Origin: Malacoraja senta
Taxonomy: Eukaryota
Assembly: GCA_038087875.1 (NCBI GenBank)
Contig: JAXLNO010000046.1
Coordinates: 1 to 64,000 of the forward strand
Length of the DNA: 64,000 nt
Direction: 5' to 3'
In this document: piece after piece, positions 15,831 to 63,590 of the stretch
Layout: every line of letters starts with the position of its first letter
Numbering within the stretch: the first letter of the stretch is position 1
Notes under the pieces: model-generated
What the model was told of the DNA's origin: nothing
Databases searched by the model: none
What the model saw: only the letters and a program-made list of their open reading frames with translations
Position numbers and translations under genes: made by a program

Positions 15831-15861
<31 letters not shown>

Positions 15862-32211: not shown

Positions 32212-33798
32212 GCATTGGAGGAACTGTTAAATTAGATGCACATGAAACTCCATGGCTCCATTTAGAAACAGCATCCAGGTTGCCTTTTGCTTCAACGAGA
32301 AGGAACAATCTTATGGAAATATAAAATATTCCAGTAGTCTCTCATCTGACATTTAACGGTTAAAACAAATCTGATGAACCTTTCTCATTACAATGCCACA
32401 CCTTATTACAAGACCATAACCTTTATTAAACCCAGAACAAATATCATGAAAGAACAGTCGAGTGGATTTATCCACAAATATTAAATCCTAGTGACTTGAA
32501 AATTTAGTTGTGACTTCTAACAATAATGCCATGTCCTAATTGACAAATTATTGCTTGCAAGAACCAAAAATTCCCTCTTGCATATTGAAATTGCAATTCT
32601 TAACTTTAAATACAACATACTCAATAACTTACTAAAGTGATACGTGGACCCCACATTCAGCTTTCTACGATGATTGACCAACCTGCTGACCCCATGCTAC
32701 ATAAGTTCTATGAGTAGAATTAGGCCATTCGGCCCATCGTCTACCCCTCCATTCAATCATTGCTGATCTATCTTTCCCTCTCCACTGCATTGTCCTGCCT
32801 TCCCATAACCCCTGACACCCTTCATAATCAAGAATCAGTTAATCTCCACCAATCTTCTAAAGATTACCAAAAATCCTACTCTGGCTCCTCGTTTGCTGTG
32901 GTCTTAGGCAATTTGTCTAGGAGAGATTTATTTCAATGTATAATTTTCAGGGCACAGAATTTTAATGTACTTTTGATCATTAAAAGCTCACAATTAAACA
33001 CCAAATGACTCAACTTGCTCATCAACTAAAATTGGAACTCATTGCAAAGTATTTTGGCTTGCAAAAGATTAGCACATTTTCAAAGGCCAAAAATCTACAA
33101 GGTCTATGCAATTACCTATGTGTAAAGCAGGTCACATGCCACTTCATGCAATTGAGTTTGGATATTATATAAGGCAAATCTTGCAGGATTGTATTGCGCT
33201 TCAGTGGCAAGGTATAAGTGGAGTTGAATTCACTACTAGTTATTTACATGAAATCGTTTATTCTGGTTACAAAAAATCAATTTCACAATGTTTTCAGCCA
33301 AGGTAGGTCAGCTAAGAGCACTGGTCTAGAATCAATCACATGAATAGTTCACTGCATTAACATCTAGAGTGCAAGATTCAAACCAGTGACCTATTATTAC
33401 ATAGGAGCAGTCAGAATGTCTGCCAGAAGTTTTGTTTAAATGAATGCTCGATGTTGAATAAAACTTCACTATTGATGTTCATCAATTTTAGATTGTACAA
33501 TTCCAATTGGCTCCTGATCTTCAGTGGGTTTTGGGATGGAGTATCCCACCAACCAATCAAGGTGAGTATTGTGAAGCACATAGTCCATCACTCCATGCAT
33601 GCCCCATGGATCTTCACTAGTTGCTCTTTACTCTGTACGGATAGATCCGAGTAGAGGTGGCTGAGGACAGGGTACTGGATATCTCCCCGATGACCATTTA
33701 CTCCCATGACCAATTACCATTTGCTCTTCAATGTGCCGAGGCAACCCATGGACATTTGAAGCAAGGTTTGACAATTGCTGAGAAAGATTACGAGTCAC

Positions 33799-36028
33799 CT
33801 TTGATGGTATCAAAGGTAACTTTGAGGGTATGAGACGTGAATTGGCCAAGATTGACTGGTAATTAATTCTAAAAGGGTTGACGGTGGATATGCAATGGAA
33901 GATATTTAAAGACTGCATGGATGAACTACAAAAATTGTTCATCCCAGTTTGGCAAAAGAATAAATCAGGGAAGGTAGTGCATCCGTGGATAACAAGGGAA
34001 ATCAGGGATGGTATCAAAGCGAAGGATGATGCGTACAAATTAGCCAGAAAAAGCAGCATGCCGGAGGACTGGGAGAAATTCAGAGACCAGCAGAGGAGGA
34101 CAAAGGGCTTAATTAGGAAAGGAAAAATAGATTATGAAAGAAAACTGGCAGGGAACATAAAAACTGACTGCAAAAGTTTTTATAGATATGTGAAAAGAAA
34201 GAGATTAGTTAAAACAAATGTAGGTCCCTTGCAGTCAGAAACAGGTGAGTTGATCATGGGGAACAAGGATATGGCGGACCAATTGAATAACTACTTTGGT
34301 TCCGTCTTCACTAAGGAAGACATAAATAATCTGCCGGAAATAGCAGGGGACCGCGGGTCAAAGGAGTTGGAGGAATTGAGTGAAATCCAGGTTAGTCGGG
34401 AAGTGGTGTTGGGTAAATTGAATGGATTAAAGGCCGATAAATCTCCAGGGCCAGATAGGCTGCATCCCAGAGTACTTAACGAAGTAGCTCCAGAAATAGT
34501 GGATGCTTTAGTAATAATCTTTCAAAACTCTTTAGATTCTGGAGTAGTTCCTGAGGATTGGCGGGTAGCAAACGTAACCCCACTTTTTAAGAAGGGAGGG
34601 AGAGAGAAAATGGGGAATTACAGACCAGTTAGTCTAACATCGGTAGTGGGGAAACTGCTAGAGTCAGTTATTAAAGATGGGATAGCAGCACATTTGGAAA
34701 GTGGTGAAATCATTGGACAAAGTCAGCATGGATTTACGAAAGGTAAATCATGTCTGACGAATCTTATAGAATTTTTCGAGGATGTAACTAGTAGCGTGGA
34801 TAGGGGAGAACCAGTGGGTGTGGTGTATCTGGACTTCCAGAAGGCTTTCGACAAGGTCCCACATAAGAGATTAGTATACAAACTTAAAGCACATGGCATT
34901 GGGGGTTCAGTATTGATGTGGATAGAGAACTGGCTGGCAAACAGGAAGCAAAGAGTAGGAGTAAACGGGTCCTTTTCAGAATGGCAGGCAGTGACCAGTG
35001 GGGTACCGCAAGGCTCAGTGCTGGGACCCCAGCTATTTACAATATATATTAATGACCTGGATGAGGGAATTGAATGCAATATCTCCAAGTTTGCGGATGA
35101 CACTAAGCTGGGGGGCAGTGTTAGCTGTGAGGAGGATGCTAGGAGACTGCAAGGTGACTTGGATAGGCTGGGTGAGTGGGCAAATGTTTGGCAGATGCAG
35201 TATAATGTGGATAAATGTGAGGTTATCCATTTTGGTGGCAAAAACAGGAAAGCAGACTATTATCTAAATGGTGGCCGACTAGGAAAAGGGGAGATGCAGC
35301 GAGACCTGGGTGTCATGGTACACCAGTCATTGAAAGTAGGCATGCAGGTGCAGCAGGCAGTGAAGAAAGCGAATGGTATGTTAGCTTTCATAGCAAAAGG
35401 ATTTGAGTATAGGAGCAGGGAGGTTCTACTGCAGTTGTACAGGGTCTTGGTGAGACCACACCTGGAGTATTGCATACAGTTTTGGTCTCCAAATCTGAGG
35501 AAGGACATTATTGCCATAGAGGGAGTGCAGAGAAGGTTCACCAGACTGATTCCTGTGATGTCAGGACTGTCTTATGAAGAAAGACTGGATAGACTTGGTT
35601 TATACTCTCTAGAATTTAGGAGATTGAGAGGGGATCTTATAGAAACTTACAAAATTCTTAAGGGGTTGGACAGGCTAGATGCAGGAAGATTGCTCCCGAT
35701 GTTGGGGAAGTCCAGGACAAGGGGTCACAGCTTAAGGATAAGGGGGAAATCCTTTAAAACCGAGATGAGAAGAACTTTTTTCACACAGAGAGTGGTGAAT
35801 CTCTGGAACTCTCTGCCACAGAGGGTAGTCGAGGCCAGTTCATTGGCTATATTTAAGAGGGAGTTAGATGTGGCGCTTGTGGCTAAAGGGATCAGAGGGT
35901 ATGGAGAGAAGGCAGGTACGGGATACTGAGTTGGATGATCAGCCATGATCATATTGAATGGCGGTGCTGGCTCGAAGAGCCGAATGGCCTACTCCTGCAC
36001 CTAATTTCTATGTTTCTATGTTTCTATG
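33799..36028 (+). mobile_element. CR1 LINE, 5'-truncated, with uninterrupted 683-aa RT ORF (33878-35929)
   Basis: Complete RT domain, no endonuclease; (ttctatgt)n tail; TSD GTCAC at 33794-33798 and 36028-36032. Confidence 0.95.
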
Positions 36029-37485
36029 TCACAGCCAGTGATTGAGATTCAAGCTGCAATTCCAATGTTGTTGAAGTGTCAATTCTTGGTTTCCCAGCCA
36101 CTGGAGGAAATCAGAATTAAGTGGATCTGAAATGCCACTGGGGAAATTGCTTGACCATCTAGAATGATTGGAAAATTCAAAGCTGTTCAAGTATAATAAC
36201 TGCTGATGGCTTTTGTAAAATATTACAGTGAGGGAATGTCAAGAAATATTATCAGGATATTTAGTTAAGGGTCCAATTTAATGGTTTGAGTAGCAATACA
36301 ATTTCTGGAGTCCAAGAGCGGTACTAACATCCCCAATGACTGGTCCTCATGCACCAGAATGTACAATGACTTAGTTAAAATACATTGGCATGTGCATTGC
36401 CAAATGCGAAGACCTCTGGTTCAGCAAGGGTACAATAATAAAAAACTTAGTGAACTAGGGACATGTTGAACCATTCAAGACCCAGCTATCAGTAATAAAG
36501 AACTTGCACGTTTGTGAGGGTGGAGACTTTGCTTGCCTCTATATTAGCAATTCCTTAGCAAACCATACCTCTGGTTTCCCAGAAATCTCTTGCATTTTTT
36601 CATTAGGCTGCATCTTCCTCTGGTCACCAAATATCTCACCGAGCCGTTTGGATATCTTGTAGTTCGACAAATGCTGAATCTGCTCCTTTCTTTGCAATTT
36701 CAATCTCGCGAGATCAATGCGAGATTAATATGCAAAAGCCAACATTGGACAAAAGCAACTTTGGATCTGGGTACGCTAATTAAATGGTCATTGCTTGCGA
36801 ATTTAAAACAGGATTCAGTAGAAAAACAGGAAACCAAGTTAAAATTGAGGCTGCCATCCAGTACATAATTTGCTCAAGTTTTCAGAAGAATCAAATTATT
36901 TTAGAACTGAAGGTTACTAGCAGATGATGACCAACAGAATGCATTTCTTACCAGATCCACAAGCTTGCAGGGATGAGAGTTTGCTGACCATTCAAATTGG
37001 CTTGCTTTATTTTAGCTGTGGAATACCAGGCCTTTTGTGAGCCTTTCAGATCAAAGATCCTCAGTGTACATAATAACTCTGCTCTGGTCTGTTACACGGT
37101 CGGCACCTTCAATGGGGGCAACCACTTGATTGGGAAGAAACAAATCAAAATCACTCCAATTCAGCAAGAACTCTTGCAGTCAAGGTTTGCATTGATCGAT
37201 TGTGTTTTTAAAGAACATTGCATGCACGTTTAAGGATTCATTCATAGCAGAAGATCACTGCATCATGTTCGATGTTCAATGGTGTATACATTCAGATAAT
37301 AGCTAGCCAACAAAAGTCAGATTTGAAGTTATCTTAGGCATGGGGGATGATTAAGGAAGTCCTCAGATTTCAGGAGTGCAGTGTCCATTCCAGCAGCCAC
37401 TTCACTGTACTGTAGTTGTTGTCATGGCTACAACTCCCATTACAGAGTCCTTTACACCCTGGAAACTTGATGTCACCAGTTCCTT

Positions 37486-37901
37486 CATTCATTCATTCAT
37501 CATCGTTGAAAACATTAGCGACGCAGTGGTGCTGGTTTTCGACGGGAACGGTGACTGACGCACCACACATCTCTGTCCTCCAGTTCCTGCGGACATCCGC
37601 CGCTGGAAGTAAAGAATTTTGGTGTGTGTCCTTTATCATCATTCCTTACAAGCTATATACGACAGTGATCACAACTGCTACTGAAGTGTGGATGGCCGTT
37701 GGCTCGCTAGAAGCTCATCCACCCTTTGACAGGTCTTGTTTTTGGTCCTGCTGGTGAGGAGGGGGCTTTGGTCACAGCCCCCTCCTCACCTGGCAAACCA
37801 GGTGGGGGAAACGGTTTAGTCGCCGACTATCCAACCATGGAGCAGGTAGCACGGGATTACATGGTACCAGTGGTGGGGGGAACTCCCCCCCCCCCCTCCC
37901 A
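37486..37901 (-). mobile_element. Short non-autonomous retroposon, probably RTE-clade derived
   Basis: 11-bp TSD ACCAGTTCCTT (37475-37485, 37902-37912), (TGAA)n 3' tail, RTE-like C-terminal motif ELEDRDVW, internal 15-bp perfect hairpin. Confidence 0.7.
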
Positions 37902-38009
37902 ACCAGTTCCTTGGTTTCAGTAAGGACCTGGAATATTGGATAGGTCAAATATTAATTTATGTTTAATCCTAATAAATGGTGCTTATAATTCAATGCACAA
38001 CAATGCTTA

Positions 38010-38133
38010 GATCCCAAATGTGCTGTAATGGCCCCTTTCATTGTAGCTTTCAATCACATGGCACTTTAAAGGATCCCATATGTGCTGTAACGGCCCCTTT
38101 CATTGTAGCTTTCAATCCCATGGCACTTTAAAG
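38010..38133. repeat. 62-bp tandem duplication (2 copies)
   Basis: gatcccaaatgtgctgtaa..ggcactttaaag twice, 3 mismatches. Confidence 0.9.
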
Positions 38134-39149
38134 TATATCTACTTGCAACTTTTATAAAATATTAGACAGTTGGCCTTCAAATCCACACATTCTTTCCCTT
38201 ATCCTTTTAGCAGCCTTAGATTTGTACCTTAATATGATCCAGGTTGTAATGTTGCCGAGCAGATTGATGAAGCAAGAACAAATGTTCATATACCAAGGTA
38301 CAGAACACAAACCTAGTCTGTGGACTGGAGAAGGATGAGAGGTTTCTCCTCCAGATTGTCCAAGCATATTCATTGGCGCTGAAGCTGGAATTCACAAGTT
38401 AAATTATGTATTTTCTTGGGAGAATTTGGATCATTTTATAAGGCTATGTACTTTTTAATAGAGCGGACAACTAATGGTGTCTATGCAGGCAGCTCTCACA
38501 AATCTGTTGATCCACATCAAGTTTGGTAGATTAGCCAATTGGAACAAACTTCCTTGTATATGCAAGCTTAAAATAAACAGCAAGTTATAAGATTGACAGA
38601 GGGCTCAGCTTAGTTGGAGCTATGATGCAAGCTGAAGTAAGTCAGCTACTTTTGGAGAAATTGATGGTGTTAGCTACAAACATACAAGTAATACAAACAG
38701 CCATGTATTTAGATATTACATTAGAAGTTCCAACTTGTCTACCATTGGTTTGGTATTACTGGCAGCTGCTGCTGAAAGAATCTTCACTCCTTGTTCTGCT
38801 ATTTCACAGATGGTCTCTTTGGCATGGGCAGATGCAGCAGAGACCTGGTCACGTGGTAGATCCATCCCTTTATCAACCACACTCTGAAAGATGAATTCAT
38901 ACTATTAGCTATACTTGGAGCAATTAGTCCAAATACTGACCATTCATTTGTTGTGGATAGGATTTTAAATATTGATATGCTTTCAAGAATTCTAGTCAAC
39001 AAATTTGTACATCTAATAAATTATCAACAGTGCAGATATTTCCTATTGTAGACATTGAGAATTAAACCATTAAAGAGCTACTTACAGATTTAGAACTAGC
39101 AAATTTAAAGATTGATACAACTACCTTCCATTAGAAACTTACTGTTACA

Positions 39150-40455
39150 TAGTTATCTGGACTACACTCCTCCCACCCTGCCTCTTGTAAAGATGCGGCC
39201 CCCTTCTATCAATTTCTCCGTCTCCACTGCATCTGCTCCAAAGATACATTCCATTTTAGGACATCCGAGATGTCCTTTTTAGTAAACATGGCTTCCCCAG
39301 AGCTGTCTTAGATGAATCCTTCACCCATATCTTGTCCCATAGTTCTGCTCTTGCTCCCCCTCCTCTCAGATGGAACAAGGTTAGAGCTCACCTGGTCCTC
39401 ACCTTTCACCCCACCAGTCTTTGTATCCAACAAATCATTTTGACAATGATATTTACCAGCACTTGGCCACTCAGTCTTGGCGATGCAAGTGCTTGCCCAG
39501 ACACTTTTTAAATAATGTGAGAGTATCAGTCTCTGTCACCCACTCAGTCAGTGCACTGCAGATCCCTCCCAAGTCTCTTACCCTAAACCAATGTTCTCTG
39601 TTTTAAGCAAGCCAAGACTCCACCAGTCCCCTCTTCCCATCTCCACCCCTTTCTGCCTTTTGCAACTCCTTAGTTCATGCATCCCTTCCACCCAAACCAG
39701 AGGGTGCAGGATTATAACACCTGTCCCTATACCTCCTACCTCACCTCCATCCAGGGACCCCACCCCAGCAGTCCTTCCAGGGAAGACAGGTTCATGTGCA
39801 CCTCCTCTAACTATCTACTGCATTCAGTGTTTCCAATGTGGCCTCCTGTACATCAGCGAGACCAATTGTAAGCTCACCCATCATTTCACCAAACACTTGC
39901 GCTCAGTCCGCCAAGGCCAATCAGATCTCCGGCCTTAGTTTAGTTTAGAGATACAGTGCGGAAACAGGGCCTTCGGCCCACCGAGCCCACGCCGACCAGC
40001 GATCCCCGTACATTAACACTAACCTACAAACCTGTACGTCTTTGGAGTGTGGGAGGAAACCAAAGATCTTGGAGAAAACTCATGCAGTCATGGGGAGAAC
40101 GTATAAACTCCGTACAGACAGCACCCATAGTCGGGATCAAACCCGGGTCTCCGGCGCTGCAAGCACTATAAGGCAGCAACTCTACCACCAGCCGCCCATT
40201 AAGTCTCTTCCAAGTCCCCAATGGTTGCTAACTATTTTAACTCCCCTTTCCATACTGACCTTTCTGTCCTGGGTCTTTTCCTGGAGTAACTCAGCAGGTC
40301 AGGCAGCATTTCTGAAGAACATGGATAGGCAACGTTTTGTGTCGGGACCCTCCTTCAGATATCGCCTATCCATGTTCTCCAGAAATGCTGCCTGACCCGC
40401 TGAATTACACCGGCACTTTGTGTCTTTTTTTTGTAAACCAGTATCTGCAGTTTCT
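39150..40455 (+). mobile_element. Penelope-like element remnant (RT thumb plus GIY-YIG), interrupted by a V-SINE (39936-40190, -)
   Basis: YLDYTPSHPASCKDAAPFYQFLRLHCICS and IYCIQCFQCGLLYISETNCKLTHHFTKH (GIY-YIG pattern IYCIxCxxCxxxYIGET); ends in the short repeat family. Confidence 0.75.
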
Positions 40456-41375
40456 TGTAGTGATAAAATTTAGAAATACAAGTAAAATGTATTTCATGCC
40501 TTGTTTAAAACAGAGAACATTGGTTTAGGGTAAGAGGTTTAGAAGGGATTGGTGGAAGAGTTTCTTCACTCAGTAAGAATGATTGGAGTTTGCAGTGCAC
40601 TGACTGAATGGGTGACAAAGACTCTCACAATGTTTAAAAAGTGTCTGAGCAAGCACTTGAATTGCCAAGACTGAGTGGCCAAGTGCCAGGAAATAGCAGT
40701 ACTGCAGATGGGTGTTCTACTGGCCAGCATAGATATGATGAGCTGAAAGCCTGTTTCTGTGCTGCCTGACACCATGACTGTCGGTAGGGAGAGAACAGAT
40801 TATAAAAAGAAAGCTGCAAAGACTGGAGCCACCTCCTGCACATGGAAGCTGACCCTATGTTGTGGAGTCTGGTCAGAGGGCAGCATTGTTCGCAGGCGAA
40901 GCCTTGTTGCCTGCCACATGATTTAGATTCCAAAGGAAGAACAGAGCTCTCTTGTATCACCAGTAAGCAGCTGACTAATGCATCTCATTACTCCTTCAAT
41001 ATTCACTTTCCAGACTATTTAATAGATGTTGTCTTCAACATTGCTTTGAAATTTATTCTGCAATTCACATCCTTGCAAGTGTATATATATATATCTACAG
41101 TTGTTTAATTTGAATCAACTCAGAAACAATTATTGATGCTTGCATATTGTCCGGTCAGTAGAAACCCTCACTGCAATGCAGGACAAAGATGACCAATCTG
41201 GGACACTTGGAGAATGCCTGAGAGTGTTTGAAATTCTGGGTTTGTTCTGAATTCAAAACCTACTACTGAGTGTCACCTTTGTTCCATGTAATCCTTAAAC
41301 ATTGTCAAAATAAATTGTGCCAAAGAAGTAATGAATCCAACGTGTAAAAGCTTTGTTTAAAAATGTATTAAAAAA

Positions 41376-41700
41376 AATAGGTGCAGGAGTAGGCCATTCT
41401 GCCCTTCTAGCCAGCACCACCATTCAATATGATCATCCAAAATCAGTACCCCGTTCCTGCTTTTTCCCCCATATCCCTTGATTCCTTTTGCCTTAAGAGC
41501 TAAATCTATCTCTCTTGAAACCACCCAGTGAATTGGCCTCCACTTGCTTCTGTGGCAGAGAATTTCACAGATTCACAACTCTCTGGGTGAATTTTTTTTC
41601 CTCATCTCAGTCCTAAAGGGCCTACCACTTATTCTTAAACTGACCCCTGGTTCTGGACTCCCCCAACATCAGGAGCATTTTTCCTGCATCCAGCCTGCCC
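41376..41700 (-). mobile_element. CR1 LINE 3' fragment
   Basis: CR1 3'UTR and ORF end. Confidence 0.85.
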
Positions 41701-42144
41701 ATTAAAATGGTTATAACAGGCTGGATCTGAATGCACATAATATATAGAGAACTGAACCTTAGATGGCTGTACCAACCTCTCCTATTGGGAAATTCCATAC
41801 AAGCAGTGTGCAAGTATGTGTGGATGACACACAGGCCAAAATTAGAGACCTCTCTTCATAGTTTTCAGTGAGGAAGTGCCCCCATTGAAAGTAAATAGAA
41901 AACAGGGCTGTAACCTCCTCAAAGGCATTGAAACAATTGTCCAATAACAGCCAAAACTTGTACAATTCTTAAAGGATATCAAATTTGTATTTTTCTTTTC
42001 CAAATAATATTTAGTCTTGCAAAAGCAAGATTAAATGTGCATTTAAATTCAGGATTTTAATTCAAACTTACTTTTACATTGGGACAGTTAACTATAGACA
42101 AGCACAAGTAATAGCATATTACCAGAAATCTAATTGAACCTCTG

Positions 42145-45100
42145 ATTTTACTTCGGAGTCACGTGAGTCGCTTTCTTCAGATAACTTGTAGTTGGAACAA
42201 CACAAGTCAGAATGGAGAAAGGATGTAAGAGGCGTTCCGCACGTAATCTCGAGAAAGACCATGGGTCTGCGAGTAGCGGGCGCCCTTTTGAGGAGTTGGT
42301 AACAGCTATATACGGTTAAAAAATATACCGTTGTAGCGCCATTAGGGCACAAGACAGACAAAAGGCCGGGTGGCCAGCAGACTCTGAGGAGTCAGACCGG
42401 AGGATCCCCGCCTCAGGCAGACATTTTGTCTATTCGGGTCCGCGTTGGGAGAGCCAGCGCAGGGAATGCCTGGGGAAGGTCCGGCTTAGCGTTGGCCTAC
42501 AAGAGAGCCAGCGCAGGGAGTGCCTGGGGAAGGTCCGGCTTAGCATTGGCCTACAAGAGAGCCAGCGCAGGGAGTGCTTTGGAAGGTCCAGCTCAGCGTT
42601 TACCTACGGGAATGCCAGCGCAGGGAATACTTGGGAAGGTCCGGCTCAGCGTTGGCCTACAGGAGAGACAGCGTGAGCAATGCCTGGATAAGGGCATTTT
42701 ATGCGTTGGTCTACAGGAGAGCCAGCGCCAACTATGTCTGGAGGAAGACAGTTTAAACGTTGGCCTACAGGAGAGCCAGCACCAGCAGCACCTGAAAGAA
42801 GGCTGCCTATGCGTGGGCCTACAGGAGAGCCTGTGCGGCGAGCACCTGGAAAAGGGTGTACTATGCGTAGGCCTATGGGAGAGCCAGTGCTAGAAACACC
42901 TGAAGCAGGATGCCAGTTCGCCCCCTCCATGAGGAGGATTATTTTACGCAGCAAAGATTCAGATGACGAATCATATGAGGACCAGAGCCCAATAACAGAG
43001 CCTAAAGGACCAGGTTTGGCACAATATATAACATTTGTTGTTCCAAAACTATCAGGGGAACCATTGGGAAATAAATTAGCAATGTCAATAAATTACTTGC
43101 TCTCCCAGCAGCTCCAGGTTCTGACCATGTATGAGCTGTCAAAAAATATGAAACCGCAGAATTGAGCACTGCAAGCAGTCTCAGCGGTGAGAAAATGACA
43201 GATGGTGTTGAAATTGCTGGTTCAGGCATTATGGCTTTGGCCAGAGGTTTGGATGGAGAGCATGTGTCTGTATCACAACAAGGTTGACTTAGCACTCATG
43301 TGTAGTGCGCACTTTGAAATAAACTGTATTTATAAAAGTGCTATAAGACCTAACATATACCCTAAGTTTGCGGGGCTCTGTAAACCATCTAATATTCAAT
43401 TGCCTAAATCTGTTTTTGGAAAAAAAATTTTTTTTTTAAATTAAAAAAAAACTAGCCAAAAAAGGGTAAAAGACCTCGATGAAGCTGTCGGTGATTGGCA
43501 GATCAAATCAAAGGCAGTTTTCCCTACCGACGTGTGGTGACTGGGGACAGTGAAGGATCAAATCAGCCTTTCCAATATTTGCGTTATTGGCGCACTGCTC
43601 CTGAGGTACGTGGAGGTACAATATTCCCACTAAGATCAGGGGATAACAATTGCCATTGGCAAACCCTGAGGTAGGTGGGTCTGGTTCTGTAAGAGACATA
43701 TTAATGTTTTACACTTACAAGTTGGGGAAGATTACAATTCTTCCTAAAAGAATGGCAATCTGATGTATTTTATACTGTACAGTATTGTGGGGTTTAGAAT
43801 TGAATTCTACCCATATTTGGATTCTCCTACTCAGCATATTTCAAACCGGACACATATTTTCTCAAAAGAAGAGAATATGCAGATTCAGGCAGAACTTGAA
43901 ATATTGTGTAAAAAGGGGTAATTAAGAAATCAGTTCACCATCACCACCAATTTGTGCCGAGTATTTTATTAGAGCAAATAAGGATGGTGGGTGTAGAATT
44001 ATTCTAGATCTGACAAGTCTTAACCCTTTTTGGTACAGTATAAAAAACAGTTTTGGAGACATTTGCCAATACTATGCAGCTAAATTCAAGAAAATGCTAT
44101 ATGGCTAGCATAGATCTTAAAGATGCATATTACTGTGTGGCTGTACATGGTAATAATCATAGATATTTAAAATTTAGCTGGATGAGTCAATTATGGCAAT
44201 TTAAACCATTGTATTAGGGTTTAACCTCAGCTCTGAGACTATTTACCAAATTGTTAAAACCAATCTTAGCACTACTAAGAGCTCAGGGCCATTTGGTAAT
44301 GGCCTATTTGGATATATTCTGATTGTAGGAAACACTCGGGCTACAACAGAACCACCAGTGTCAAGAATCAAGCTAACTTTGGAGAGGCTGGGATTTATTA
44401 CCCATCCAGATAAATCCAAACTATTACCAAGCACAGTAATTGATTACTTGGGTTTCATTATTAAATCAGAACACATGGTAGTGATTCTGCCCAAGGATAA
44501 AGGCTGCATTTAAGTGGAAGTTGTATTAAGCTCATTGCACAGCACCAACCCTCAATTAGGCAGGTAGCAAGCCTGCTTTGCAAACTAATTGCTCATTTCC
44601 AGCTGTACAATTTAGATCGCTGCATTATCAGCATTTACAGCAAGCATAGGTACAGGCATTGAGGATACAATCAGGGCATTTTGCCAAGCCCATGTAATTG
44701 CCAGTTGCAGTTATTACTGGAATACTATGGTTGATCATGAGTGTCTCAAATGCTTCCAGAGAGATCCTGGTTGAAACACCTTCCATTATTCTACAGACTA
44801 ATTTTAGTGCTCTAGGTTGGGGTGCTACTTATACTATTTCCAGTTGTGGAGGTAGATGGAATGTGGAGAAAGTACCTTTGATCCAATAACAAGGGATCAT
44901 TTAATGAGAGTTTTTAGGAACATTTTATGGACCTAAAGCTTATTGCTCTAATATGCAAAGTTTGCATGTTTAGGTACAGATTGACAACACTACGGAATAG
45001 AAACGTATGTTAATCATTTGAGTGGTATTAAGTCAGAAGCTTGTGAATAGATTGGCTAACGTGATCTGGACCTGGTGTTTTTACCAGAAATATTTTGTTT

Positions 45101-47059
45101 CGGTAATCTATCTACCAGGTAGATTCAAAATAGTTGCAGACTCAAGGTCACGTAAATTCAATGACAATACAGAATGGATGTTGGATCGTGACAAATTTAA
45201 TAATATTGTTGCACGGTTGGGGATGCCAGAGATTGACTTGTTTGCTTCCAGACTTAACCACCAATTACCTAAATATGTGTCATGGGAACCTAATCCTGGG
45301 GGCAGTAGTGGTGGATGTTTCTCGCTGCATTGGGGTAAAAAAATTTTGTATGCATTGTCTCCATTTTGCCTCATTTAGTCAGTGTATACAGAAGATCAAA
45401 CAGGACTCCGCTTCGGGAGTATTGGTGGTACCAGACTGGCCTACACAACCATGGTACCCTCTGGTGTTAAAAATGATCACAAAGCCCCTTATGATTTTCC
45501 CAAACAGAATTAACCTGTTTGTGCACCCCATAACTGATGATTCACATCCTTTACATAATCATATTTGTTTGTTGGTTTGCAGATTCTAAGGAGTGCCATA
45601 TCTCGGAAGAGGACTATCAGATCATACTGTGGATGTTATTGCAGCAACCTGGAAGGATAGTACCCAGAAGCAGTACATTTCTTACATAAGGAAATGGGAG
45701 GTGTTTTGCTTAAGGTAGAATATTACATATCACACTGCAGACATCTCAGACGTGTTAGAGTTTCTATCAACTCTTTATTTTGATTGGCAGTTAAGCTATA
45801 GTGGTTTCAATACTGCAAGGAGTGCCCTCTCTGCATATCTATGGAGGGAATCAGAACAACATTCTGTATGGTCACACCCTTTGGTCTGTAGATTTATGAA
45901 GGGAATTTTCAATTCTAAGCCTCCTAGACACAGGTATACAGAAATCTGGAATGTAAGAGATGTGTTATGCTTTTTCGTTAATGGACTCCTATTGCAGCTC
46001 TGTCCTTGGCCAAAATTACCATGAAGGTAGTCATGCTCAGGACACTGGTTTCAGCACAGAGAGTGCAAACATTGCAGAAACTACGAATAGACATGATGGA
46101 AATAGCAGCAGATGCTATTACGTTCTATGTCTATGATTTGCTTAAACAGAGTAGACCTGGAGTCACAGGGTGTAAGTTGGGGTTTACAGCATATCCTACG
46201 GATCCACGTCTATGTGTAATATCACATTTACAATGTTACATTAAAGCCACCCGAACCTGAAGAGGTGCAGTATCAGCATTCTTTATCAGCCATAAATAAA
46301 CGCATAAGAAAGTGTTGGTTCAGACTATTTCAAGATGGCTGAAGCAGGTGTTGCTTGATGTAGGTATTGATACTGACAAATTTAAATCTCATTCCACCAG
46401 GGCGGCATCAACATTGGCGGCCAAGGATTTGGATGTTCCAATAGACCATATCCTCGCGGCCGCAGGATGGGCAAGTGAAAGGATGTTTCACAAGTATTAC
46501 CATAAGGAGATTACAGTACCTGTGGTTATTTGGTAGTGCTGTTTTGGATTCAGTATTAAGTTTCCCCTTGTGATAAAGGGGTTACTATTGTGGTGATAAA
46601 TTAACCATTAACTGGTTGCATCCATGTTGTGGTTATGCATTGTTGATTGCTTTACTTATTTAGAGTCAATCAATGCAGTGAGACACCTGGATTTGAATCT
46701 ACGGCGTGAAATCACAGAGCTTTGAAATCTTCACGTAGTCACTCACGTGACTCCAAAGTAAAATAGTAAGATTAAACGAGAACTTACCAGTTTGAAGTTT
46801 GATCTTTATTTTATGAGGAGTTACGATGAGGGACTACGTGCCCTCCACTCCCAACCCTCATAAAGGTCAAACTGGTAGTTCTAGTTTTCACGTATCTTAC
46901 TATCATACTTCAGTAATTATCTGTGATTTCACACCGCTGCTTTGAAGATTGACGCGTGTGCGGCTGGACGGGCTCTTCTTCACATAGTCCCTCATCGTAA
47001 CTCCTCATAAAATAAAGATCAAACTTCAAACTGGTAAGTTCTCGTTTAATCTTACTATT
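42145..47059 (+). mobile_element. DIRS1-like tyrosine-recombinase retrotransposon, full-length but degenerate
   Basis: RT (CRIILDL, YMASIDLKDAYY, VMAYLD), RNase H (LGWGA, IDNTT, ADSRSR), MT-like (IDLFASRLN), YR (SAQRVQTL, HSTRAAS, AAGWAS..FHKYY). The internal complementary region 46741-46840 pairs with both termini (42145-42168 and 46981-47059). Confidence 0.92.
42449..42890 (+). repeat. 54-bp minisatellite (8 units plus a partial) in the DIRS 5' ORF
   Basis: Unit gagagccagcgcagggaatgcctggggaaggtccggcttagcgttggcctacaa; 18-aa GEPA...RWPT repeat. Confidence 0.9.
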
Positions 47060-47141
47060 AAGTGACTTGCATTAATTAGACGGCAAAGCACGGGTTGAAA
47101 TGAGCAGCATTCTCACTAGTTAGAATGCACAGGAAGTCTCA

Positions 47142-47727
47142 AGGGCCTGTCCCACTTACGTGTCCTTGCCACGCAAATTACGCAACCTCATGGTCCCGTT
47201 GATCCGCGACGGTCCTGCGAAGGTTGGGTGCGATTACATGCGTACGCACAGCCGTCTGGAGCGCATGACGTCATTTGAAGATGGACACAAAGCTGTAGTA
47301 ACTCAGTGGGACCCGCAGCATCTCTGGAGAGAAGCAATGGGTGACGTTTCGTGTCGAGACTCTTCTTCGGTCTGAAAAGAAGGGTCTTGACCCGAAACGT
47401 CACCCATTGCTTCTCTCCAGAGGATGCTGCTGGCCCCCGCTGTGTTACTCCAGCATTTTGTATCCATCTTCAATTTTCTTGGCCCTGCTCTGGGAGTAGA
47501 AGTGGGGGGCGGATCCGGACCGCAACGGCCATGAGCCCCAGGCCAAGTTCAGCGATCATTTGCCAGCTGCTGCTGCTGTTTAGTTCGCTACAAAAATTTC
47601 GGAGCCCCGTGCGATGTCGCGCACAACTCCATACCCCTCCGCGCTTCTCAGCGGGACCGGCCCCGCGCCTCAACGTGACGATGTCGCGTAATTTGCGTGC
47701 CAAGGACACGTAAGTGGGACAGGCCCT
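47142..47727. mobile_element. PIF/Harbinger-type MITE
   Basis: ~45-bp TIR AGGGCCTGTCCCACTTACGTGTCCTTG..; 3-bp TSD TCA; carries internal Penelope-type repeats. Confidence 0.85.
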
Positions 47728-47895
47728 TCACTCCCTAGCCTAAAGCATCAAGTACTTCAGGTTTTCACTTAAATGTGTGCACTTGATTGATCTCAAATGC
47801 CCTTTCACACACCCACGTCTGAAGTGGCATTCCAGCGAAAGGGATTGTGACCATTAAACAAAAACTTATGCACACTGGAAAAAATGTGCACAGAC

Positions 47896-48092
47896 TAGTT
47901 TAGTTTATTCAAACAGGTCCTTTGGCACACGGGGTCCACGCCAACCAACAATCACACATACACTAGTTCTATTCTACACACTGAGGCCAATTTACTTAAC
48001 CCCATTAACCTACAAAGCTGCACATCTTTGGAATGTGGGAGGAAACAGAGCACCTGGAGAAAACTCCATGGTCACAATGAGAACATACAAAC
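47896..48092 (-). mobile_element. V-SINE-like fragment
   Basis: Reverse complement of the family at 10534. Confidence 0.65.
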
Positions 48093-48139
48093 TTTACTTG
48101 AATCAACATTTCAGGGACTCACTGCTTTGAGAGAATATC

Positions 48140-48181
48140 TTTATTTAAGAATAAACAGATAGTGCCATTATAACTTTTATT
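48140..48181 (-). terminator. Candidate polyadenylation signals of the perilipin gene
   Basis: AATAAA on the - strand at 48176-48181 and 48140-48145, about 0.7 kb after the stop and just before a SINE. Confidence 0.5.
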
Positions 48182-48891
48182 GACAATATTTACTGGAACA
48201 TTTGGCATGTCATCCAATTTAAAATTAGAAACTCGCCCAATACTGTTGCGTTGACAAATGAAAGATGTTTGGATGACTACAAGTGAAAGTATGTGAAGAA
48301 AGTGCTCGTGAAACTTCAGTGCCCATGTGTCACCTAGGTTATTTTTTTAAATCCCAAACAATTCACACTTCAAAAAAAGGATTTAGTTCTTTAAGCAACA
48401 CCATGTTAAAGCAAGGAGTACTTGGGACTGAAGACTAGTTTAAATGTTAGAACAAATCTTTTCACCCAAGCACCATGCTGATGTGGTCAGATGAAGCCCA
48501 ACACACGCTCATACTATAGCCTGTTCAAGTTAACATACTTACTGGCTGGTATGTAGGAACAAGTTGCAGTTCCTATTTTCAGAGTAAATTCAGGCATTGC
48601 ATAAAGGTAATAAATGTGATACTATTTCAACATGTAATTTCCCAATCAGTATTGGGAAATACAGAAACATACATTGCAATCATGCAGTGCTAGAAATACT
48701 AGGACAGGACAACACATTGAAATTGATAGGATACTGTAAATAAATTGAGACAAAGTAGTTTGGTGGAATGTTGTTCAATTTCTCTTAAAATACAAATTTA
48801 GTCAAATAGCAAGGTCAAAGTTTAAATGCCAAGAATTAACAAGTTTAACACAGGCAATCTACCCAACAAGTAGAACTTGAGGGTGGTTACA

Positions 48892-49266
48892 CTATTCCTT
48901 AATTTCATCCATTGCAATCATCTCCTGTGGTGGTGATTGAGGGTTCTCAGTGAGCTGTGGGGCAAAAGGACCAACCATCCAGTTGAGGGGAGTGTTGTGA
49001 AGCACATAGTCCATCACCCCATCCATGGACTCACGGATCTTCAACATCTGCTCCTGGCTTTGTGCCAGGAGCTGCCCAGACAGATCCCCAAAGGAATGTG
49101 CAGAAGAAAACGAAGTGTGGATGGTCTCTGCTGTTTTGCGGATCTGCTGTACTTTATCTTGAATGTGCTGGGGGAGACCGTGAACATTCGAAACCAAGGT
49201 GCGACAGGTTGTCTGTAGTTGTTGAGTGAGACCATGGGTCATGGTCAACATTCGAGATTCAAGTTG
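48892..49266 (-). CDS. PLIN3: Perilipin last coding exon (four-helix bundle)
   Basis: tttattgcag|CAACTT; encodes QLESRMLTM...[17 protein letters not shown]...DEIKE*. Confidence 0.93.
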   Translation of the reverse strand, partial: QLESRMLTMTHGLTQQLQTTCRTLVSNVHGLPQHIQDKVQQIRKTAETIHTSFSSAHSFGDLSGQLLAQSQEQMLKIRESMDGVMDYVLHNTPLNWMVGPFAPQLTENPQSPPQEMIAMDEIKE

Positions 49267-52200
49267 CTGCAATAAAAACAAAGGAATTTTAAACGAGTAA
49301 ATCTACAAACTAATGCCAAGATCTGGTGGATAGCCAGAATTTGTATTACAAATAACCCATTCCACCAGGTTGGAGGTTAGGGCACCAAACACAGCTGCTA
49401 CACCTGAATATACCACTAGATGCATTTTATGAAATCATTTGAATTAATGCAAATTAGTCACAGATTCCAAGGGAAGTTTACAATAGTTCCAAATGTCTAA
49501 ACAATTCAGTAGTCAGATTAGCCATCCAGCACTTGCCAAGTAATATTTGTGATGGCCAACTGGAGGAAAGTCACAATCACTAACTTTATTGCAGCTATTT
49601 GGATTTCACGATAATGAAGGAGTATTTAATTTCCAAGGAAATGAGGGTATTTTAATCCTAATACCTAAATATTAGTTGACTCACTGAAATGTTCTGTGGC
49701 TACAAGATTAAAAAAGTACAGTCTTCACTCCTATAGGTTTCAGGGTTGTTCCATTTCCTACCTCTGTTTTCGGAGCACTTTGTTCCTCTACTTTAGCATC
49801 AGGTTGATTTTTCACCCAATCATCCCAGGACTGATGTAGTTTCTCCTGAACACCATGGAGTTTCTGATTTGCTGAATCCACTCCTTTCTTTGCCAATTCA
49901 ATCTATAAACAAACCTGGTTATAAGATGCTGGAAAAAACACCCTAAAATTTGTCCCTCACCAATTCTCCTCCAGCAAGAGTTCACAAGACTGAGTTTTAT
50001 CAGTAAGCCCTTTAGATGCTTGCAGAGTATTGAAAGGTGTGTTAACATAAGAGATGTTCTTGGCCAATACAAATATTCACACATGCCATTGTGGCTGTAC
50101 ACATTATTACCCCAGAATAGTGAAGGTGTAAACTGAAGAAACTCAGCGGTTCAGCCAACACTCCATTACATCAAAATGGTTTTTAAACCCCTGAGGAATG
50201 GTGTCCACCTGCCCCAAATTAATGGTGAAGGGAATATGGAAAGGTTTAGAAGGATATGGGCCAAACACAGGCAGTTTGGTCAAGTGTAGATGGGGCACCA
50301 TTTCTATGTTGCATGACCGGCAGGAAGTGGATGTGGACTTGGCATCCAACACGTGGACATCTCAAATGTCTACCTTGTACAGTGTAAACAAGAATAGAGC
50401 TACAGGAAATACAAGTGCACTTCCAGAGAGCCATCTTGTGCTCAATGGGCCAGACCACATCCAAGCTGCAACTCAAGTGCTTAAAGATAGAGCAGTGCAT
50501 AATTTGTGGTTTAAAGCAGCAAAAATAATTCTTACCAGATCCATTGTGTTGTGAAGTTGAGAGATGATTTCTTGGCTGCTTTGCCTAACCTTCTGTATCT
50601 TAGCAGTGGAGTGCTGATATGCTCTGTGACGAACCTTGGAGGACAAAGATCCCAAACGCACATAGTAACTTGACTCTTGTACTGGGGCCAACTCAAAACC
50701 TTCTGTAGATGTGGCCAGTTTTGCTGGAATACAGGAAAGGTTAGAGGCAGTTTAGGACTGTTGAACATTAAACACCAACTAGATTTAATGTACTAACCAA
50801 AACTACCATTTACGTTGAAATTTCTAGCATTTGTTTGAAGATAGATTATAGAAGCTATGATTGTGAGGTTATCCACTTTGGTGGCAAGAACAAGAAGGTA
50901 GATTCTCTGAATGGTGTCAGGTTAGGAAAAGGTGAAGTACAAAGAGACCTGGGTGTGCTTGTACATCAGTCACTGAAAGTATGCATGCAGGTACAGCAGG
51001 CAGTGAAGAAAGCAAATGGCATGTTGGCCTTCATAACGAGAGGAGTTGAGAAAAGGAGCAAAGAGGTCCTTCTGCAGTTGTACAGGGTCCTGGTGAGACC
51101 ACACCTGGAGTATTGTGTGCAGTTCTGGTCTCCTAATTTGAGGAAGGACATTCTGGCTATTGAGGGAATGCAGCGTAGGTTCACAAGGTTAATTCCCGGG
51201 ATGGCGGGACTGTCATATGAAAGAAAGGAGCGACTGGGTTTGTATGCACTGGAATTTAGTAGGATGAGAGGGGATCTTATAGAAACATAACATTAAGGGA
51301 AATGGACACGCTAGTTGCAGGAAACATGTTCCCAATGTAGGGGGAGTCCAGAACCAGGTGCCACAGTTTAAGAATAAGGGGTAGGCCATTTAGAACTGAG
51401 ATGAGGAAAAACCTTTTCACCCAGAGAGTGGTGAATTTGTGGAATTCTCTGCCTCAGAAGGCAGGAGGCCAATTCGCTGGATGCATTCAAAAGAGTTAGA
51501 TAGAGCTCTTGGGGTTAGAGGAATCAAGGGATATGGGGAGAAGGCAGGAACAGGGTAGTGATAGTGGATGATCAGCCATGATCACATTGAATGGCTGGCT
51601 CGAAGGGCCTACTCCTGCACCTATTGTCTATGTATCTATGTATTGTTGAGACTATTTAAATAGTTTATTTCAAACTTAAGTCTTCTGATCCTATCCATAA
51701 TTGCAAGCATTAGAATAGAACTGCCAGTGGAATCAGTAGGTACTGAATTGAATATATCAGACTTCACAACTTGCTCAGACTTCAGTGAAGTATTTGATAA
51801 AGTCTCAAATGTGAAACATTGGTAACTTTGTAGATGACAAAAGTTGACACTGTTTAGAACAAGATTAGTTGTAGCCCATTGGACCAGACTGTTTAGCTAA
51901 TGAGCGAAGGAAATAGGCACCGTTTCGGACCGAAACCCTTCTTCAGACTGATGGGGGGGTGGGGAGACGAAAGGAAAAAGGCGGAGGAGCCCGAGGGCTG
52001 AGAGGAGACAGCCCGAGGGCTGAAGGGGAGGAGACAGCAAGGGCTAACAGAATAGGGAGAATTCAATGTTCGTGCCACCAGGATGCAGACTCCCCAAGTG
52101 GAAGTTGACAGAGGAAGTGGAGGAGGAACTTGCATTAGGGGCCAAGCAAGATGGTGCACTTTGAGAACTATTAACAGTAGGACACACACAATAATAGGAA

Positions 52201-55200
52201 GGGTCCCAGGAGCATCAAGGAACAGAGGGAACTTGTATGTTGAACAAACCCTGAAGATAGCACCACAGGTAGATAGTGTGGAACACCAGATATTTGTCTT
52301 CATGAGCCAAGGCATAGATCATGAGAGATAATACAACTTTAAGATATTGGTTATGGTACGACTGGAGTAGTGGTCAGTACTGGTCAGCACACTGTAGGAA
52401 AACTTGCACGAGGAGATTCACCAGGATGTTGTTATGAAGTGACAGGATAGGCAGAGATCATTATTGTTCAAACAGATTTACAGCATAGACAGGAAGTATA
52501 TTTATAGGTAGCCGATGGTCAAAGTGTCCACTTGTGTTGTCAGACAACCACAATTATTGGTGTCCACCATATCCAAGACTGTCGGTGGGGCAGTGCACAA
52601 AGAAAGTCATGACTTAGAGATGTCTGTTCTTCGACCAAATCTGAAAACATTGATTCAGAAAGATTAAGATAAAGACTGACAACACCGATTGTCACAGTAT
52701 CCAACCTTCCTGCCCACCATACAGAAGACAACTTATACAAACCAAGTTTCTTACCTAGTTCTTCTTCAGTCAAAGGAAGATAATGATCAACCATCTCCTC
52801 AGATTTGTTGAATGCGTTGTCCACACCAGTGGCCACCATCTGGCCAACTTTGGATGTCATGACGGTGTTTACTCCTTCAACCACCACATTTCTGGTAATT
52901 TCAATGCTATTGTGTACAGCTCCCTTGGCCATGTCAACTACACCAGTCACAGTGTTGGAGACGGCATCTTTCGCTCCAGTGATGGTGGATGAAACAAGCA
53001 CCTTGGTGTCTGCAACAACCTGCAAAGACAATTTGGTATCCAATGGTGACAAGAACAAAATTCCATCTAGATGCAACTTTCTGGTTTTCACTGGGAAGCT
53101 AGCCAATCCATTTCATGAACTTTTGATCATTTATAATTGTTGAATGGATTAATTTGCCATTACCAATAACAATGTAAACTTTAACATTTGTTTAGAGAGA
53201 ATAGCACTTTGAATGGCAATACTTGCATTAGTGCAGCAATTTATATAGCTTACAGAAATTACATTGAAAGATAAAAATCTTGAATATACCACTGACGTCA
53301 GATATTGAACTCTGCAATCAAACCAGGTTCTTGCAAGTGAAGGCTTTATTTGCCATTTATACCAAATGAAGCACATAGCCCCCCAAAGCTGGAGTTTGCA
53401 CCAAAGATACTAGAGGAGCTTTGGTTTGCACACCTTTCCAAAGCCCCTATTGCAGGGTAGACGTTCCTTACCTGGGGTGTGGATTGTTGCAGGATTGGAA
53501 GCTTCTCTTCCAGTTTATCCAACCCCATACAGGCATATTCATTAGCTGCTGCAACTGAAGAGAACAGTTTAGTTACACAGTACTTATAAATGCAATAAAC
53601 CCCCTCACCCACAATGACACAACAACCTTGTATTCCACATGGTTGCCATGACCCGGGTCAAGTTACGCAACACGATCTTCCCGCTAGAAGTCCACATCAG
53701 GTGGTGATCCAAAATACATTTGTACTTGCCCCAAAACTCCAGCATTAAGGGCATGTGACAAATGTTTATACGAAGGGATACAGATCATGGTCAATACTTT
53801 GTATGGATGCCCTTAAGAAACGCTTCATTAGGAGCAGAAAGAGAAACTGAAATCATTTCAGGGCTTGAAACTTCTTGTGAACAGGCCAAGTGATATAGTG
53901 TGAAGGTCTAAATCAGAATGCAACTAATTCCATGTTTTATCTAGATATGTCTTACTTTGTGGTTCCAGCTTGTTCATGATGGGCTTGGCACCACTGACAG
54001 CCACAGCAGAGATTGCCATCACTCCCTGCTCTGCAACATCGCACACAGTCTTCATGTATGGGTGGTTCTCCTTGGTGTTGTTATAAACAGCTGACACCAT
54101 ATCATAGGCAGAGCTCACAAGAGGCAGGTTTGTAACCCTGTTCACCACATTCTGAAATAAAGTTGACATTTTTTCCATTAACACAAGCCCAAAATCAGGT
54201 CAAAATCAGTCACCCCCCACTTCACATTACCAGCAATGGGGTATAATATGCAGCCCCCTGCACTTGGATCTTCTACACCATCCCCACCCCAAGTTTTAAA
54301 GTTTATTTTGAATATACACAACTGAGGTTGAATTCCAAAGATTCAAAGCCATTACATTAGTGAATCACCAGCATTGACAATCCCTCGTTCTAGATAGCCC
54401 AACTCGTCTCAAAAAGTTGATAATTTACACGATCAGTTCTATCAGACTGAAGAAGGGTCTCAACCCAAAACGCCACCTATTCCTTCTCTGCCTGTCCCGC
54501 TGAGTTACTCCCACTGAGAATTTTGTGCCTATTCCCTCATGGTAGCTTGGCTGAATTTGTACAAAGACTCAGCGCGTAGTCTGTGAAACCATTCTTTTCC
54601 ACCATAAGAGTGTAACTCTTTCTTATTTCTTCTCTTTCTCAAACCCAGGTGACACTAACAGAATGTATTGGAGCCTACCAGAGAGAAGGCAATTCTGGAT
54701 TTGATGTTGTCTAAGGGAACTCAAGGTAAAGGAACCACTAGGAGGTAGTGACCATAATATGATAAGTTTTAATCTGCAATTTGAGGGAGGAGGTTAAATC
54801 AGAAGTGTCAGTGTTGCAGTTGAACAAAGGGGACTATGTTGGCATGAGGGAGGAGCTGGCCAAAGTTGACTGGAAAAGGACCCTAGCAGGAATGACGGTG
54901 GAACAGCAATGACAAGAATTTCTGGGTATAATCCAGAAGATGCAGGATCATGTCATTCCAAAGAGGAAGAAAGATTCTAAGCGGAGTAAGAGTCATCCAT
55001 GGCTGACAAGGGAAGTTAAGGATGGAATAAAACTAAAAGAAAACACAACAAAGAGTAGTGGGAAGCCAGAGGATTGGGAAACTTTCAAAGGATAACAAGA
55101 AGGTAACAAAAAGGGCAATACGGGGTGAAAAGATGAAGTACGAAGGTAAGCTCGCCAAGAATATAAGGGATAGTAAAAGCTTCTTTAGGTATGTCAAGAG

Positions 55201-62219: not shown

Positions 62220-62635
62220 GCTGGGGTGAATGGACAATGTTATGCTGGGGTGATACATGGACAATGCTCTGCTGGGGTGATACATGGACAATGTTATGCT
62301 GGGGTGATACATGGACAATGCTAGTGTTGGGGTGAATGGACAATGCTAGTGTTGGGGTGATACATGGACAATGTTATGCTGGGGTGATACATGGACAATG
62401 CTCTGCTGGGGTGATACATGGACAATGCTCTGCTGGGGTGATACATGGACAATGTTATGCTGGGGTGATACATGGACAATGTTATGCTGGGGTGATACAT
62501 GGACAATGCTAGTGCTGGGGTGATACATGGACAATGTTATGCTGGGGTGAATGGACAATGCTAGTGTTGGGGTGAATGGACAATGCTAGTGCTGGGGTGA
62601 TACATGGACAATGTTATGCTGGGGTGATACATGGA
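62220..62635. repeat. 27-bp minisatellite (~16 units, some 24-bp variants)
   Basis: Unit gctggggtgatacatggacaatgttat. Confidence 0.95.
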
Positions 62636-63274: not shown

Positions 63275-63590
63275 CATTGACACAGATTTCCAATCTTCAC
63301 TTATTTGTGGGATGATGAGTCCTGAGGCATCTGTTCTCCAGTCAGCTGTGGGATGAAGGGTCTCATGAACCAATGAAGGTAAGTGTTGTGAAGCACATAG
63401 TCCATCACTCCATGCATTCCCTCGTGAACCTGCCACAGCTGGATCAGCCATTGTACAGATGGATCCTGGTAGGTGGAAGCCCAGGACAGACAGGGTGCTG
63501 AAGATCATCACATCTGCTACATTTGCTCTTTGAGGCAGCCCATGAACATTTAACAGATGGATTGTAGTTTGTCAGAAAGATTCCACCACC
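63275..63590 (-). pseudogene. Decayed last exon of a third perilipin paralogue (continues past the N gap and the window edge)
   Basis: The - strand reads NLSDKLQSIC*/NVHGLPQ.../[37 protein letters not shown], with frameshifts and stops. Confidence 0.78.

Follow-up and report, generated by a model that had tools for sequence, protein, structure and literature searches.

We analysed a 64,000-nucleotide stretch of DNA from the skate Malacoraja senta (contig JAXLNO010000046.1 of assembly GCA_038087875.1, positions 1 to 64,000 of the forward strand), called the window below, and in it a dead perilipin gene, called the relic, which lies between the 3' part of HDGFL2 and an intact perilipin gene. 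Perilipins form the coat of lipid droplets. Six remnants of perilipin exons stand there on the minus strand, from 38883 to 33469, in the same order as in the intact neighbour, as judged by tblastn together with reading of the sequence. The original prediction, made from the letters of this DNA, had described colinear remnants of coding exons 2 to 7 at 33469-38883 with largely kept splice sites, and these coordinates agree with our exon limits. In our opinion the relic is an unprocessed, non-functional skate orthologue of a chondrichthyan perilipin, here called B-type, which sharks and the elephant fish have retained; we put the probability of this reading at about 0.88. The remnants and the two retroelements that interrupt them, one resembling a short interspersed nuclear element (SINE) and one long interspersed nuclear element (LINE), are as follows.

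38722-38883, minus strand: remnant of coding exon 2 (PAT region), a single open frame; acceptor ttcag kept, donor shifted by one base.
38313-38384, minus strand: remnant of coding exon 3; AG and GT kept, 10-nt deletion, last codon TAG.
37902-37927, minus strand: 5' part of the remnant of coding exon 4 (the 11-mer repeat exon); its 3' end is the target-site copy AAGGAACTGGT (37912-37902).
37486-37901, minus strand: SINE-like retroposon of 416 bp in exon 4; tail (GAAT)n, target-site duplication of 11 bp without mismatch.
37338-37474, minus strand: 3' part of the exon 4 remnant; frameshift at 37404, LPMTKEEL end lost, donor GT changed to CT.
36952-37088, minus strand: remnant of coding exon 5; acceptor AG and donor GTAAGA kept, stops and frameshifts.
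36569-36704, minus strand: remnant of coding exon 6; AG and GT kept, frameshift at 36644, stops in the original frame.
36028-36053, minus strand: 5' part of the remnant of coding exon 7 (LESQSLAV); acceptor ttgcag kept, one codon (Q) gone.
33794-36027, plus strand: LINE of 2.2 kb, antisense in exon 7; its reverse-transcriptase open reading frame (ORF), 33878-35929, matches RVT_1 with 117.7 bits.
33469-33793, minus strand: 3' part of the exon 7 remnant (4-helix-bundle region and C-terminus); frameshifts, and TAA in the entry frame.

A 414-aa model of the neighbouring intact perilipin, used as tblastn query against the whole window, matches the relic on the minus strand with its amino acids 4-69 at 38892-38728 (42% identity, E 4e-9), 81-97 at 38369-38319, 105-123 and 161-178 at 37485-37347, 197-234 at 37084-36975, 244-262 at 36704-36648 and 299-398 at 33798-33517 (35% identity, E 6e-10). 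Besides the relic, only the intact gene itself and a last-exon remnant at 63571-63340 score in this search of the window. When compared with Pfam, the stop-free pieces of the relic match PF03036 (Perilipin) and no other family, with 26.1, 12.7 and 14.6 bits, and the profile positions that they cover (41-69, 310-337 and 379-398) are colinear.

The acceptor AG is kept in all six exons. Three of the five donors retain a clean GT, the donor after exon 2 is displaced by one base, and that after exon 4 reads CT. The positions of the acceptors and of the clean donors are homologous with those in the neighbour gene, so the relic has the exon-intron structure of the family. Since it retains five introns with their splice sites and lies in the ancestral cluster, it is not a processed (retrotransposed) pseudogene. 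Its native stop region can still be read as well: IDEHQ is followed by TAG TGA, which ends at 33469. In relic intron 3 a 62-nt unit is duplicated in tandem (38010-38133); related species have a single copy.

Lesions were called by a frameshift-aware alignment of the 1021-nt concatenate of the exons, with the insertions removed, to the closest live relative. There are ten frameshifts (38381, 38365, 37404, 37085, 37027, 36968, 36644, 33687, 33652 and 33605) and three in-frame stops (38315-38313, 37063 and 37048), thus 13 frame-breaking lesions distributed over five exons. In exon 3 a 10-nt deletion is the cause of both frameshifts, and the terminal codon is TAG (38315-38313) where live genes read CAG. 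Exon 2 stays open, with two in-frame deletions of five and six codons which take out conserved PAT residues. Exon 4 has an internal deletion of about 19 codons, and some 20 are gone at the junction of exons 4 and 5. With these deletions, stops and frameshifts and the two exonic retroelements, no ORF for a full protein is left at the relic. The prediction that the copy is disabled by stops, frameshifts and two insertions is thus borne out, and both insertions are real and lie in exons.

The second target-site copy of the SINE-like element is 37485-37475. Words of its sequence reach a depth of 1e5-1e6 in related skates vs about 50 for the flanks, and contigs enter the element from both sides, which indicates a high-copy family and an insertion common to related skates; indeed the insertion occupies the same site in three related species. 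Rfam gave no matches in 33300-39200, and the loci fetched from other species hold no copy of the insert. The LINE has a (TTTCTATG)n tail and GTCAC at both junctions. It is missing from the contigs of two closely related species, where 33793 is joined directly to 36028, thus the insertion is recent. These LINE-free contigs also settle the exon limits: 33794-33819 belongs to the LINE, and exon 7 starts with 36053-36028. Once the LINE is excised, the frame of exon 7 reads through the junction as QLESQSLAV|TRNLSQQL.

Searches with the live skate protein and with a shark relative returned three types of chondrichthyan perilipin, which lie on one chromosome in each species. Sharks, batoids and chimaera all have the A-type, whose members share 76-96% identity with the live skate gene. 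The B-type (412-427 aa, with one model of 480 aa) is about 60% identical to A and intact in 11 shark species. The C-type, found in sharks, has about 330 aa, is near B and is without PAT exons. In the same frameshift-aware alignment of the concatenate, the relic shares 196 of 329 residues (59.6%, score 651) with the B-type protein of Heptranchias (P0042), and 163 of 324 (50.3%, score 465) with its live A-type neighbour. None of 147 representatives of perilipins outside the A, B and C types matched the relic better than these chondrichthyan proteins do; the 147 derive from the 150 best matches in a library of 1.84 billion proteins, as the new representatives of clusters at 50% identity.

Individual motifs show the same affinity. 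The exon 4 peptide of the relic is VLTETKELVTSSFQGVKDSVMGVVAMTTTTVQ, to be compared with VLAETKELVTSKMTDVKESVMGVVDVTTTAVQ in the B-type, and the extra 11-mer of the A-type is absent. GMDTALLKSE stands for GMDISLLKSE of the B-type, the start of exon 7 is LESQSLAVTRNLSQQL vs LESQSLALTRNFSDQL in C and B, and the C-terminus, EPI..IDEHQ, corresponds to EPI..IDKPQ of the B-type. The live shark genes most like the relic are those of Heptranchias perlo (P0042), Scyliorhinus canicula (P0081) and Carcharodon carcharias (P0125), annotated as 'perilipin-2-like' or 'perilipin-3-like isoform X1'. They agree with it in orthogroup, exon structure, the shorter 11-mer exon, the C-terminal motif, the place downstream of A and the orientation; they differ in that their ORFs of 412-427 aa are intact, whereas that of the relic is broken by lesions and two retroelements. 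The 'perilipin-3' of Callorhinchus milii (P0070) is likewise intact, but only about 50% identical to the relic.

The shark C-type (e.g. Heptranchias P0127) falls in the same clade and is the nearest type to the start of exon 7 in the relic. However, C-type genes skip the PAT exons, whereas the relic keeps recognisable PAT exons 2 and 3, hence it does not correspond to a C-type gene model. A Heptranchias C-type gene retains a decayed PAT exon (locus L003, 11045-11200; about 40% identity to B) which its gene model skips, and on this ground C-type genes look like B copies that were shortened by their N-terminal exons.

The length of the 11-mer exon deserves a separate comment. The original prediction reconstructed it to about 180 nt and considered it PLIN5-like in size, with a deletion as alternative. 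The size was close to the 163 nt that we find, but its likeness to PLIN5 is an artefact. The B-type exon natively has about 244 nt, seven codons fewer than the 265 nt of the A-type, and the relic lost about 80 nt more by deletions. A deletion was therefore part of the answer, and the rest is a natively shorter B-type exon.

A tree of 53 sequences, without PLIN4, was computed with IQ-TREE (support is given as ultrafast bootstrap/SH-aLRT, the latter a Shimodaira-Hasegawa-like approximate likelihood ratio test). The relic stands inside the clade of shark B and C genes (100/99), and Callorhinchus P0070 is sister to the elasmobranch B/C clade that includes it (99/95). The A-type is a separate clade (100/98 in the first tree). 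When the relic frames were projected with the A protein as a guide, the placement was the same (SH-aLRT 99). Within the PLIN3/4/5-type branch the chondrichthyan copies are all united in one clade (100/99); PLIN5 falls among the PLIN3 sequences of amniotes, and PLIN2 makes a clade of its own. Since the chondrichthyan copies are monophyletic within that branch, their duplication is independent of that of the tetrapod genes. This agrees with published timing: Granneman et al. 2017 (PMC5342826) assigned the duplications that gave PLIN3, PLIN4 and PLIN5 to tetrapods, later than the split from the coelacanth, with no cartilaginous fish in their sample.

Two further observations concern names and families. 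The PLIN2 clade holds no cartilaginous-fish sequence, in the hit lists or in the tree, and all chondrichthyan PLIN2/3-like genes that were found sit in one cluster. Many of the chondrichthyan genes in the PLIN3/4/5 branch carry the annotation 'perilipin-2-like', and a low-quality protein with this name from Scyliorhinus torazame (P0265) groups with PLIN1. A shark gene called 'perilipin-2-like' or 'perilipin-3-like' should not be taken as a one-to-one orthologue for its name.

The order of genes is consistent with the tree. In Callorhinchus (L007) an A gene (P0028, 1-6308) and B (P0070, 10001-15513) share a strand, with B 3.7 kb downstream. In Heptranchias (L005) gene A2 is followed, in the same orientation, by a B-like gene of 427 aa, and a C gene stands upstream of A1. 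In the window the A gene runs from 58429 to 48892 and the relic from 38883 to 33469, downstream in the same orientation, as in both of these species. The Heptranchias cluster as assembled comprises at least seven perilipin genes or fragments with inverted blocks over about 130 kb. Heptranchias perlo also has another dead perilipin last exon, interrupted by several stops, at a distance of 5.7 kb downstream from an intact B gene (CM068665.1, locus L001, 20612-20851).

Skates differ in what is left of the site. The relic is also present, with additional indels that shift the frame, in contigs of at least three further species at about 2-4% divergence; among these indels are +CT at 37404 and -2 at 37457, common to all three, and -1 at 38764, which two of them have. 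The syntenic alignment with Rhinoraja extends from the A gene as far as window position 41551 and continues at 33336, across a single junction without an assembly gap, which means that an interval of 8.2 kb with the whole relic was deleted there. The protein hit lists of four annotated batoids (Rhinoraja, Mobula, Hemitrygon and Narcine) include no B/C-type protein, and in Narcine no B remnant lies within 10 kb downstream of the A gene.

Synonymous (dS) and nonsynonymous (dN) divergence and their ratio omega were estimated pairwise by the method of Nei and Gojobori. Relic vs shark B gives dS 0.95, dN 0.275 and omega 0.29, skate A vs shark A gives dS 0.67, dN 0.086 and omega 0.13, and omega is 0.21 for shark B vs chimaera B. 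Two-rate reasoning and the density of indels suggest that the relic has evolved neutrally during roughly 20-60% of the period that separates it from the skate/shark divergence; the error of this rough estimate is wide, and it is compatible with a loss in the skate lineage as well as with a single loss in stem batoids.

Three other readings of the relic itself have to be weighed, and the evidence above treats them rather harshly. A recent duplicate of the live neighbour, specific to the species or genus and decaying fast, would be adjacent to it, on the same strand and with the same exon structure, as indeed the relic is. It would not, however, be closer to shark B than to that neighbour, nor separated from the latter by a saturated dS of 1.9, and the approximately unbiased (AU) test rejects a grouping of the relic with A (log-likelihood difference 47.8, p 0.0017). 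Together with the strongly supported place in the B/C clade this refutes the idea of a recent copy, to which we attach practically no weight, and upholds the original view of an old paralogue. Orthology to tetrapod PLIN5 or PLIN4 appears just as improbable. The relic adjoins HDGFL2, where the amniote PLIN4 and PLIN5 genes lie, and its 11-mer exon is short; it was on such grounds that the prediction turned to these genes and to a lost chondrichthyan member of the PLIN3/4/5 cluster. But the short exon is accounted for by the B-type length and two deletions, the literature puts the relevant duplications in tetrapods, Tandem Repeats Finder reported no PLIN4-type array of 33-mers in 33300-39100, and a grouping with PLIN5 is rejected by the AU test (log-likelihood difference 100.8, p 2e-49), PLIN4 being outside the tree. 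What stands of this part of the prediction is the PLIN3/4/5-type branch and the loss in this lineage; what falls is the counterpart of amniote PLIN4 or PLIN5, and a loss throughout chondrichthyans, given the intact copies in the 11 sharks and in the chimaera (P0070). The relic could, finally, be a live gene that appears broken through assembly errors or unusual splicing, since exon 2 has an open frame and most of the splice sites are kept. This is very improbable, if slightly less so than the other two: the frame-breaking lesions are many, two retroelements lie in exons, and independent contigs of three related species share the relic with its SINE-like element and add frameshifts of their own. 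Moreover Rhinoraja dispenses with the whole interval, and in two run searches no RNA-labelled run was among those that hold the unique part of the relic; these runs look genomic, although the kind of library is unstated, and one run flagged 'RNA?', which we judge to be probably DNA, covered essentially repeats only.

A different question is when B died. It is quite possible, although we would not favour it, that B was lost a single time, in an ancestor shared by all batoids (skates, rays and electric rays), and that the relic is very old. The four annotated batoids without a B/C-type protein speak for this, as B should outrank the A matches in their lists, and so does Narcine, where the 10 kb downstream of A are without a remnant. 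A longer neutral period than the one estimated would also be allowed by the degree of decay, which is heavy with about 16 indel events in 1 kb, and by the dN estimate, which is biased downward. On the contrary, such an early loss predicts a dN on the relic branch near the synonymous value of about 0.33 per lineage, whereas our estimate is about 0.20. Nor is there a shared lesion to compare, given that no other batoid locus examined retains DNA of the site and that of Rhinoraja is cleanly deleted.

Our own reading, an orthologue of B that died in the lineage to this skate, has its weak points too. A first coding exon of the relic was sought in 38884-48890 and gave noise only (E at least 0.05). 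The branch of the relic is long (0.72), the tree does not settle its position within the B+C clade, and Callorhinchus P0028 groups with A weakly (72/38 for the alternative). The age is a crude estimate, with dS partly saturated and dN biased downward by the alignment guide. The search for HDGFL2 beside shark and chimaera B covered flanks of 10 kb, which are too short to show it: no HDGFL2 exons were found in these flanks at the loci of Heptranchias, Callorhinchus, Rhinoraja and Narcine, and the distance in the window is at least 15 kb. The absence of B from other batoids is based on annotation, and the Narcine DNA covers 10 kb downstream of A. Last, this window is the part of the genome that was read, and an intact B copy may exist elsewhere. 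We nevertheless consider the case sound. It was predicted that an intact shark orthologue would indicate a lineage-specific loss, and such an orthologue does exist.

The history could then be the following. A and B would be tandem paralogues that arose beside HDGFL2 by duplication of a single PLIN3/4/5-type gene in stem cartilaginous fishes, and sharks and the elephant fish keep an intact B that follows directly downstream of A and is oriented like it. On the way to this skate, selection on B was presumably relaxed, and point mutations and small indels eroded the copy; the SINE-like retroposon landed in exon 4, and the LINE in exon 7 much later. The relic is expected to make no perilipin. The tetrapod cluster of PLIN3, PLIN4 and PLIN5 by HDGFL2 shares its ancestral locus and its PLIN3/4/5-type branch with the chondrichthyan genes and also arose by tandem duplication, but the chondrichthyan A/B(/C) duplications are independent of it, and none of their products is a one-to-one orthologue of PLIN4 or PLIN5.

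Seen in this way, the duplication of the PLIN3/4/5-type gene in chondrichthyans was an independent event that preceded the divergence of chimaeras and elasmobranchs; skates, and perhaps batoids as a whole, subsequently lost one of the two ancient paralogues. The relic is a dated marker of this loss which can be read lesion by lesion, and it illustrates neatly, for those who annotate genomes, how a pseudogene of the unitary type can go unannotated. It is a sound case of lineage-specific gene loss of moderate interest, and its biology is modest unless the loss of B proves to track liver lipid and buoyancy. Sharks depend on huge lipid-filled livers for buoyancy, and batoids are mostly bottom-living. 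One could speculate that sharks kept, and further multiplied, an A/B/C cluster which batoids cut to A alone, and that the relic is the mark of an ecological shift in lipid storage; we regard this as unlikely, though not absurd. On the same speculation, this shift might be coupled with the apparent lack of a PLIN2 orthologue in cartilaginous fishes.

The neighbours of the relic in the window are:

48892-58429, minus strand: intact A-type perilipin, seven coding exons identified.
401-17975, plus strand: 3' part of HDGFL2, tail-to-tail with the perilipins.
63275-63571, minus strand: last exon of a second dead perilipin, of B/C-type, upstream of the intact gene; frameshifted.

The exons of the live gene are approximately 58429-58370 (exon 1), then 54151-53956, 53554-53472, 53019-52755, 50702-50536, 49902-49762 and 49266-48892. 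Its protein is 93% identical to a 'perilipin-2-like' protein of Rhinoraja longicauda and 96% to a skate protein from Logan. Exon-like stretches of HDGFL2 are at 620-982, 5979-6086, 7028-7219, 11444-11578, 14170-14430 and about 17775-17975. The exons for the integrase-binding domain score 112 bits with human HRP-2 (PDB 6T3I) vs 95 bits with PSIP1, which confirms the predicted location of the relic between HDGFL2 and the intact perilipin. A PWWP exon was not found by motif in the window, and the N-terminal part of HDGFL2 probably lies outside it.

The remnant at 63275-63571 carries the B/C-type motif NLSDKLQSIC, scores highest against the last exons of shark C-type genes (mean 178, vs 166 for B and 160 for A) and is 82% identical over 91 nt to exon 7 of the relic. 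The rest of this copy, if any, would be beyond the assembly gap at 63661-63800 or the end of the window. A weak match that resembles exon 2 (61601-61473) was rejected, as it overlaps a generic repeat (61521-61656) which recurs at 10658-10799 and 47944-48030. The order in the window is thus a dead B/C-like last exon, the live A gene, the dead B gene and HDGFL2, and both of the B/C-type copies that flank the live A gene in this skate are dead.

Two other features lie on either side of the live gene. At 42148-47102 there is a DIRS-like retroelement with traces of reverse transcriptase and the C-terminus of a tyrosine recombinase (Phage_integrase, 23 bits, 46312-46533), without a counterpart in the syntenic sequence of Rhinoraja. 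A tandem array with units of about 100 nt occupies 62220-62635, between the live gene and the right-hand remnant.

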